Notes: generated from the sequence alone by a model not told the origin. DNA of 64,000 nt from Salpingoeca rosetta (GCA_033442325.1 JAWQFM010000016.1:1035679-1099678), one strand, 5' to 3'; numbered from the stretch's first letter, positions 20,520 to 22,683 are shown. A program made the numbers and translations.

Positions 20520-22683
20520 TCAGGCGAATCGCTTCCACAGCCGCTCAAACTCCTCGTGGTAAGCTGTCACCTGTGTGGTTTCAAAATGAGCAAAATCGAG
20601 AGGACGTGAGAGTGAGAGAGAGTGTGTGTGAGTGAGTGAGTGAGTGANNNNNNNNNNNNNNNNNNNNNNNNNNNNNNNNNNNNNNNNNNNNNNNNNNNNN
20701 NNNNNNNNNNNNNNNNNNNNNNNNNNNNNNNNNNNNNNNNNNNNNNNACACACACACACACACACACACACACACACACACACACACACACACACACACA
20801 CACACACACACACACACACACACACACACACACACACACACACACACACACAAACACACACGCGCAGACACACACAAAAAAAAAACAATTGAAGGACCTT
20901 GTGGTGCATGTGCGCAGGGTCGTTGTCCATGCGAACAGGAATGCCGGCTTGCATCATTTCGTGGATGTCACTGCCTTGTGCACTGCTGCACTCGTCATCC
21001 GTCACCACACGCACCTACAAACACAGCAAGGCATGTTTTGGGGAAATGAGAACACAAACATGCTGCGCTTGTCCATGTGCAAGGTCAACATGCCCAACAC
21101 AGACAACCAGACAAACACACACGCACACACACACACACACACACACACACACACACACACACACACACACACACACACACACACACACACACACACACAC
21201 ACACACAACGGACCTTGACGCCGGTGTGAAAGGCGTGGAGGATGGCGCGGGTGATGCGGTTGTCCGTGATGGTGAAGACGCAGATATCGAGCGTGCGTTT
21301 GGCCGACTTCAGGTAGAGGAGGAAGCGCTGGAAGCGGTCGTGGCTGCCTTCCGGCTCCGGGAAGAACAGGGCCTCCGCGATATCACCACCGCTGTGCAGT
21401 TCAATTGTCTTCTCAACAGTGACTGGCGCAGCCTCGGAACCCACAACCTGACGTCGCAAGATGGTCGGGGGGTGTTGTTGAGAGTGCAACGAATACGACG
21501 ACAAACACACACACACACACACACACACACATATCCCAACATACGGTATTCAACCCCACGCACATTGTTGCAAATACACGCATGCTTACGCGGACTGGCT
21601 CGCCGAGAAGTTGGGACAGCTTTTGCGTCAGCTGCTCGATGTCACCCTTGGAGCCCTGTGCCTTCACATGGCTGCCACTGTCTGCTTGCCTGCCGGTAAA
21701 CGTCGGCACACACACACACACACAGCGTTGCGAGAGGTGACGGCGTTAGAGTGTGAGCGACATGTCCATGAACAAGCAGAAGCACAAAGACCATCCCAGA
21801 GCATTCAAGGGAAACGTGCGCGCGTGCACCTACACGTACATACTGACGGCAGTGCTTACTTTGATGGCACTTCGATACTGCAACGGAAGTCGTGCTCCAG
21901 CTCCTTGAGCGTCTGCCCGCGCTGGCCTGAGAAAAGGCAGGGGCAGGCAACAGTATTACAGTACGAACAGCATGTTGGGAGAGCAGCAAGGCTGTGCCGT
22001 GAGAGAGGCTGAAGATGAAGGCAAGCGTGAGAGGATACGTCATTGCTTGCCCGAATAGAGAGGCTACGAACCAATGATGCGGCCATAACTGCTGTGGTGG
22101 ATGTCAAACTCTGCGGTGACCAGGGCATCAGTGGATGGCTTGAACCCAAGGATGCGTTCCATCTCCTGCACTGCTCCACTCACGCCATCGTCCGTGCCCG
22201 TCACCGTCACAGCACACGACGGATCCTGGGTGCATGTGTGCATGTGTGCATGTGTGCATGTGTGCATGTGTGCATGTGTGCATGTGTGCATGTGTGCATG
22301 TGTGCATGTGTGCATGTGTGCATGTGCGCGTACATGTGTGTGAGGCTTTGCACACGCTCATGCCTGCAATGCTTACTTGCGTCGCACTTCTCGCACCCAC
22401 AAACACACACACGCACACACACGCACACACACGCACACACACGCACACACACGCACACGCACGCACGCACGCACACACACACACACACACACACACACAC
22501 ACACACACACACACACACACACACACACACACACACACANNNNNNNNNNNNNNNNNNNNNNNNNNNNNNNNNNNNNNNNNNNNNNNNNNNNNNNNNNNNN
22601 NNNNNNNNNNNNNNNNNNNNNNNNNNNNNNNNNNNNNNNCACGTCGCATCACAATCGCACACCTGCAGGGCGAGAGACGGCAT
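20520..22683 (-). CDS. KH-domain + PLD6/Zucchini(Nuc)-type single-HKD PLD fusion protein, multi-exon (two exons probably lost in gaps)
   Basis: Putative first exon MPSLALQ (ATG 22683). Exons 22225-22072, ~21926-21860 and ~21689-21590 splice to VTAEFDIHHSSYGRIIGQRGQTLKELEHDFRCSIEVPSKQADSGSHVKAQGSKGDIEQLTQKLSQLL (type I KH, GxxG). Then ALFFP..LKSAKRTLDICVFTITDNRI..GVKVRVVTDD..GIPVRMD..HMHHK (gap) ..YHEEFERLW. Confidence 0.8.
20648..20747. other. Assembly gap (N run)
   Basis: 100 n; probably hides the exon carrying the rest of the HKD motif and GSxN. Confidence 0.99.
22540..22639. other. Assembly gap (N run)
   Basis: 100 n; probably hides the first half of KH1. Confidence 0.99.

Follow-up and report, generated by a model that had tools for sequence, protein, structure and literature searches.

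We identified a multi-exon gene on the minus strand at positions 20520-22683 of a 64,000-nucleotide (nt) stretch of Salpingoeca rosetta DNA (GCA_033442325.1, JAWQFM010000016.1:1035679-1099678; the window, below). The gene probably encodes a soluble protein of about 320 amino acids in which two type-I KH domains are followed by a phosphodiesterase domain of the PLD6/Zucchini type, and which acts as a KH-guided endonuclease of single-stranded RNA. We hold the gene structure and the domain architecture with high confidence. The role as an RNA endonuclease is read from the domain content, and we give it somewhat better than even chances. The gene is already public as PTSG_06329. Its 242-amino-acid model (P0001) is most likely truncated by two gaps in the assembly, where an exon of the first KH domain (KH1) and the exon of the catalytic core are hidden.

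The surroundings are eukaryotic, intron-rich DNA, and the introns carry long CA/GT repeats. As the initial annotation had held, the exons are in phase; all are bordered by canonical AG and GT, and exons B to F total 672 nt, a multiple of three. The putative first exon (exon A, 22663-22683; all exons are on the minus strand) consists of an ATG and six further codons (MPSLALQ), and ends in phase 0 at a GT donor. Two relatives are consistent with its placement. Its end (..LALQ) aligns with ..KVLQ just ahead of the first KH strand in P0016, a full-length relative, and in L018, a genomic contig from a close relative, the next exon begins directly after the point that matches the end of exon A. The start is only putative, as the public model has a different one.

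Exon B (22072-22225) encodes the C-terminal half of KH1, a linker, and the start of the second KH domain (KH2) up to GRIIG, and contains AVTVTGTDDGVSGAVQEMERILG. Exon C (21860-21926) supplies the GxxG loop of KH2 (G-QRG-Q) and a helix; the loop (G-Q-R-G) is made across the exon B/C junction, with GRIIG and QRG on either side of the splice. The last strand and helix of KH2 are assigned to exon D (21590-21689) by alignment to KH2 of the relatives. A ParB_C match on this exon (E 0.083) was rejected as noise. Exons D and E are separated by 142 nt and have matching phases. Exon E (21214-21447), which contains SAKRTLDICVFTITD, encodes the opening third of the PLD domain and a linker in which the motif LFFP is invariant. 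The middle of the domain, including VRVVTDD, is encoded by exon F (20898-21014), which ends in phase 0 at the H-x-K of the HKD motif (HMHHK). Exon H (20520-20570) starts in phase 0 and encodes a C-terminal helix (..EFERLWKRFA) and a TGA stop; through P0016, the exon can be aligned to the EFERIW helix at the C-terminus of PLD6 from human and mouse.

Exons were searched singly, and the public protein P0001 stood in for the joined, spliced product. The single-exon Pfam matches are weak but collinear (PLDc_2 positions 4-38 for exon E and 40-84 for exon F; KH_1 positions 44-65 for exon B). The peptides quoted in the initial annotation (AVTVTGTDDGVSGAVQEMERILG, GRIIGQRG, SAKRTLDICVFTITD, VRVVTDD, HMHHK and EFERLW) were all recovered in minus-strand frames where it had placed them. 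Pfam and the alignment of relatives also bear out its description of one full KH domain, the C-terminal half of another, and a single-HKD domain of PLD6 type.

Two runs of N, each flanked by dinucleotide repeats, interrupt the gene. A 108-nt exon is expected within gap 1 (20648-20747); its 36 amino acids would include the HKD aspartate, GSFNWT and NxEN, and would complete the active site and the dimer interface. Gap 2 (22540-22639), between exons A and B, is expected to contain another exon, of about 102 nt, for the first half of KH1 with its GxxG loop. When P0001 is aligned with 18 relatives, about 50 N-terminal residues are absent (which in KH1 form the first strand, the helices and the GxxG loop), with about 34-50 KH1 residues assigned to gap 2, and exactly 36 residues are absent after H-x-K. 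These 36 residues comprise the HKD aspartate, G-S-F-N-W-T and N-x-E-N, in columns that vary little or not at all among 43 relatives. The positions of the two deletions match those of the two N runs.

The contig L018 (2764 bp; metagenome assembly ERZ27287911 in ENA) comes from a close relative with 45-77% amino acid identity per exon. It has introns at the same positions as those for exons B to H, and these are rich in GT repeats. At about 83-180, directly before the homologue of exon B, it has an exon for the first half of KH1 (IPKGLHFELIGRGG...). The homologue of exon F (L018 1618-1734) ends at the same intron position as in the window, and a 108-nt exon (2043-2150; FAVLD...GSFNWT...NCEN...) lies between the homologues of exons F and H. 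Of the motif HxK(x)4D(x)6GSxN, the part visible in the window is the H-x-K that ends exon F; the motif is complete and invariant in the 43 relatives, and complete with L018 2043-2150 as well. Exons F and H are 544 nt apart in L018 and 327 nt apart in the window, including a nominal 100 N; therefore, the real gap 1 must exceed its written length. We found no copy of the missing exons elsewhere in the 55-Mb S. rosetta assembly. L018 has both exons at identical intron positions, which strongly supports the gaps as the place of the missing KH half and of the catalytic exon, as the initial annotation had expected.

The public protein agrees with the exons that are visible. Residues 110-187 of P0001 are 100% identical to exon E in a full HMMER scan with that exon. 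It is named 'hypothetical protein PTSG_06329 [Salpingoeca rosetta]', and 'Mitochondrial cardiolipin hydrolase' in UniRef. The KH_1 match (44.2 bits, cut-off 21.5) covers residues 39-96, corresponding to KH2. The PLDc_2 match (53.1 bits, curated cut-off 27) is incomplete owing to the assembly gap: it covers profile positions 5-89 of 132. Similarity of P0001 to the full-length relatives is far past chance (E 1.6e-46), with 43% identity to P0016. The model joins exon F straight to exon H, in frame. In the protein collection searched, we found only this 242-residue model and no full-length S. rosetta protein from transcripts. The public model of PTSG_06329 is most likely wrong in lacking the catalytic core and half of a KH domain, and users of it would take the enzyme for a dead one.

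The visible exons appear to be maintained. Exon B shares 59% amino acid identity with L018 275-427, with 0.36 nonsynonymous (dN) and 1.52 synonymous (dS) substitutions per site; identity is 45% for exon D, 64% for exon E and 77% for exon F. Across the visible exons dN is 0.21-0.59 and dS 0.9-3.5 per exon, and the pooled dN/dS, summed from the per-exon codon alignments, is 0.21 (233 codons). These rates, measured against L018, indicate purifying selection on the exons that are visible.

Expression of PTSG_06329 is probable. In an index of sequencing runs, 0.98 of the sampled words of 20898-22225 are present in each of three runs and 0.73-0.78 in each of two others; these five runs look like DNA. 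Another 13 runs from five studies, whose RNA status is the tool's guess, hold 0.28-0.44. The share of 31-mers that lie wholly within exons B to F, and thus the expectation for exons only, is 0.40. As the word share of the 13 runs fits this expectation, they behave like spliced RNA with both the KH and the PLD exons.

The full-length relatives are about 315-330 amino acids long and have the order KH-KH-PLDc_2 on single transcripts. Among representatives of separate clusters at 50% identity (n=43), all 43 match PLDc_2 and 41 match KH_1; PLDc_2 scores of relatives are 88-104 bits over the full length. The architecture search proposed in the initial annotation thus returned both domains in 41 of the 43 representatives, and KH-KH-PLDc_2 is carried by at least 41 clusters at this identity. 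All 43 share the catalytic residues (H, K, D, G-S-x-N and N-x-E-N) without exception. Both KH GxxG loops are conserved across the family, and that of KH1 is present in L018 and all full-length relatives. Named members are from Diplonema papillatum (KAJ9465457.1; Discoba), from Filamoeba sp. ATCC50430 and Vexillifera abyssalis (Amoebozoa), and from S. rosetta. Most others are on transcript-sized contigs with complete open reading frames (e.g., P0016, on a 1025-nt contig). Judged from these sequences, KH-KH-PLDc_2 is a conserved protist family that spans several eukaryotic supergroups and is not unique to S. rosetta. The S. rosetta assembly has no PLD6-type gene besides PTSG_06329; other PLDc_2 matches there are two-HKD genes that P0016 does not match.

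A search with a family profile (A2) returned mostly bacterial PLD-only proteins and added few members, and a protein atlas returned only prokaryotic PLD-only clusters, with scores of at most 0.81. In a tree of PLD domains, from which animal PLD6 was left out, P0001 groups with KH-fused members (with the Vexillifera sequence, 86 in the Shimodaira-Hasegawa-like approximate likelihood ratio test). Neither a single origin of the fusion nor the relation to animal PLD6 was read from this tree, as its resolution is too poor. Other PLD6-like fusions are present in protists: a zf-CCCH domain with PLDc_2 in a Euglena transcript (P0180), KH-KH-CSD-PLDc_2 with a cold-shock domain (P0120), and HHH_3 with two PLDc_2 domains (P0023).

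The initial annotation did not recall this architecture being characterised. That part holds up, as full-text literature searches returned no paper on a KH-KH-PLD fusion or on PTSG_06329, and the architecture appears to be undescribed in the searchable literature. Novelty does not extend to the gene, which is public with both of its Pfam domains, nor to the family, which is widespread.

By sequence and by predicted fold, the nearest solved relatives are PLD6 and Zucchini, as tested on the relative P0016. P0016 matches human PLD6 (E 1.2e-27) and mouse PLD6 (3.1e-26) over the whole domain, Salmonella Nuc at 2.3e-12, and fly Zucchini at 7e-12 to 2e-12. Its AlphaFold2 model has a mean predicted local distance difference test score (pLDDT) of 93.5, a predicted template modelling (TM) score of 0.85, and no disordered segment. 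By fold, the model is closest to mouse Zucchini (target TM 0.80), fly Zucchini, NucT and Nuc, and the KH part matches KH1-2 of PCBP2, KH3-4 of FBP and KH34 of IMP. We identified no N-terminal membrane anchor, in agreement with the initial annotation: the full-length relatives begin at the first KH strand, and the seven residues of exon A include no hydrophobic stretch. A conserved Cys/His zinc site is reported for Zucchini structures. No cysteine column is invariant or nearly so among the 43 family members; therefore, the family has no Cys-based zinc site.

Single-HKD PLD nucleases act as homodimers. For two copies of the PLD domain of P0016 (residues 170-323) the predicted pair scored 0.76, and the best control 0.12. 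The mark used for this score is reached by 21 of 30 proteins solved as one-chain pairs and by none of 23 solved as single chains. At least 96% of contacts are shared between repeated runs, and the pLDDT of the partner is at least 87. The predicted interface involves residues 266-272, 282-284 and 294-298, including H269, K271, G283-S284 and N295-N298, which supports pairing of the PLD domain as a homodimer through its HKD residues. Two chains would pair through their PLD domains and build a single active site from their two HKD half-sites, as Nuc and Zucchini do. At its GxxG loop, a KH domain holds about four nucleotides of single-stranded RNA or DNA. The four KH domains of the dimer could hold single-stranded RNA and feed it to the composite active site, where internal, endonucleolytic cuts would leave 5'-phosphate ends. 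The site of action would be the cytosol or the nucleus, and the process a PIWI-independent form of RNA processing, turnover or surveillance. We count the CCCH finger, cold-shock domain and helix-hairpin-helix (HhH) fusions of related protist PLD6-like proteins in favor of a role with nucleic acids. For defence, which the initial annotation also raised, we found no specific support.

Several points weigh against a KH-guided RNA endonuclease. The choice among RNA, DNA and lipid as substrate is deduced from domain content. Nuc also cuts DNA, KH domains also bind single-stranded DNA, and PLD6 was reportedly first described as a cardiolipin hydrolase. The predicted dimer may reflect memory of the solved Nuc and Zucchini dimers, and the PLD-domain tree is poorly resolved (3 of 56 branches are starred). 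For S. rosetta itself, the catalytic exon and the exon with the KH1 GxxG loop are predicted from relatives, and splicing across the gaps, with the KH and PLD exons on one mRNA, is deduced indirectly. The protein may instead be a nuclease of single-stranded DNA (or of both DNA and RNA) that works in repair, recombination or the degradation of foreign DNA, with its KH domains binding single-stranded DNA. The close fold matches Nuc and NucT cut DNA, the similar KH tandems include FBP KH3-4, which was solved on single-stranded DNA, and the related protein P0023 has HhH motifs that bind DNA. Yet among solved relatives PLD6, a reported endonuclease of single-stranded RNA, is nearest by sequence, and the other fused modules (CCCH finger and cold-shock domain), like most type-I KH tandems, bind RNA. 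We consider the DNA nuclease unlikely. A lipid phosphodiesterase, in which the KH domains serve only as a tether to RNA granules or as protein-protein modules, is somewhat less likely again. It follows the UniRef and NCBI names of P0001, P0021 and algal relatives, and the early report of PLD6 as a cardiolipin hydrolase, but those names are automatic transfers, no family member has a transmembrane or mitochondrial anchor, and the fusions to nucleic-acid binders are repeated.

Two further possibilities concern the gene rather than its substrate. The S. rosetta copy could truly be 242 amino acids long and lack the catalytic core, and would then be a dead KH protein or a decaying pseudogene. In favor of this, exons F and H join in frame in the public model and the rest of the assembly has no copy of the missing exons. 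The two apparent deletions, however, fall exactly on N runs between dinucleotide repeats, L018 retains both exons at those intron positions, the remaining exons are under purifying selection, and the exon word share in the probable RNA runs fits an expressed gene. A dead copy is thus very unlikely. It is more improbable still that KH exons and PLD exons belong to two neighboring genes that gene prediction merged wrongly. The junction of exons D and E is a predicted one in S. rosetta, but the two exons are close and match in phase, and dozens of relatives, many of them transcript-derived, encode KH-KH-PLD with the LFFP linker motif in one open reading frame.

To our knowledge, Zucchini/PLD6 is known almost only as a membrane-anchored nuclease of animal PIWI-interacting RNA (piRNA) biogenesis. 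In the closest unicellular relatives of animals and in protists of two other supergroups, the same nuclease domain is fused to tandem KH domains and has no membrane anchor. An exon-by-exon search of the whole 55-Mb S. rosetta assembly gave no match to the Piwi domain (PF02171) at E <= 0.01, and the domain is likely absent. The KH fusion in place of an anchor, together with the lack of a Piwi-domain match, argues that the nucleic-acid (rather than lipid) activity of this branch is old and PIWI-independent. A broader proposal, which we regard as doubtful, is that KH-KH-PLD6 is an ancient eukaryotic, PIWI-independent endonuclease of RNA processing or surveillance (present in Discoba, in Amoebozoa and in the group that is sister to animals) and represents the Zucchini lineage as it was before animals. 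In animals the nuclease would have been retained, a membrane anchor would have taken the place of the KH pair, and the holding of RNA would have passed to separate KH proteins. S. rosetta is genetically tractable and has only one PLD6-type gene, and if the proposal were true it would allow a genetic test of the ancestral job of Zucchini.

The next gene downstream (16930-20063, minus strand) is on the same strand and encodes 508 amino acids with two PLDc_2 domains (PLDc_2 match at 18700-18984). The protein has a hydrophobic, anchor-like N-terminus followed by a Cys-rich stretch, and only a weak match (E 0.0075) links its first HKD exon to the solved Nuc and Zucchini. A paralogue of this gene was identified elsewhere in the assembly (G000:C16:902319). 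The tandem of two different PLD-superfamily genes may be a coincidence. Between them, a short open frame on the plus strand (20251-20349) begins with ATG, encodes a hydrophobic helix and is closely followed by a GT; the annotation has no gene at this place, and the frame is probably due to chance. On the other side, about 100-160 bp (22684-22845) separate the putative start of PTSG_06329 from a divergent gene on the plus strand that encodes a GxGYxYP domain, which suggests that the two share a bidirectional promoter.

Of the known systems, PLD6/MitoPLD/Zucchini has the same single-HKD PLDc_2 domain over its whole length, including the C-terminal EFERxW helix. PLD6/Zucchini is a homodimeric endoribonuclease of single-stranded RNA that leaves 5'-phosphates and has a membrane segment (PMC10783504). 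Where PLD6/Zucchini has an N-terminal membrane anchor, the KH-KH-PLD family has two KH domains. PLD6/Zucchini works with PIWI in piRNA biogenesis, whereas the S. rosetta assembly is without a Piwi-domain match; therefore, we infer that KH-KH-PLD is not a piRNA factor there. TDRKH/Papi is the KH partner of Zucchini in piRNA trimming. We considered a fused Papi/TDRKH-Zucchini and rejected it, as TDRKH ranks only 34th with the KH profile (E 3.7e-6) and has no special kinship. The KH pair instead matches KH34 of IMP and KH12 of PCBP2 over both domains (E 1e-15 with the KH-only profile, and also by fold).

Bacterial Nuc and NucT, and the PLD nuclease MkoB of Mokosh, have the same minimal single-HKD nuclease fold (TM 0.79-0.84), and identity to the PLD domain is as high as about 50% in bacterial PLD-only proteins. 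In Mokosh the PLD nuclease is paired with an RNA helicase (bioRxiv 10.1101/2022.12.12.520048). Nuc, NucT and MkoB have no KH domains and are periplasmic or encoded in defence islands, whereas KH-KH-PLD is a spliced eukaryotic gene of a fused family found only in eukaryotes. The closest named eukaryotic PLD-only relatives are the 'MT associated signaling protein phospholipase D' proteins of Volvox and Chlamydomonas, with 53-55% identity over the PLD domain. These green-algal PLD6-like proteins have about 220 amino acids and no KH domains, and are reported to be associated with the ciliary membrane.

KH domains are also fused to ribonuclease domains of other folds, as in KHNYN/N4BP1 (KH-NYN), RNase Y (KH-HD) and ASCC1 (KH-2H), the last of which was among our KH matches. 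The design logic is the same, with a KH single-strand binder beside a phosphodiesterase; the catalytic domains of these proteins are unrelated to the PLD superfamily, and the likeness is one of functional analogy rather than homology.

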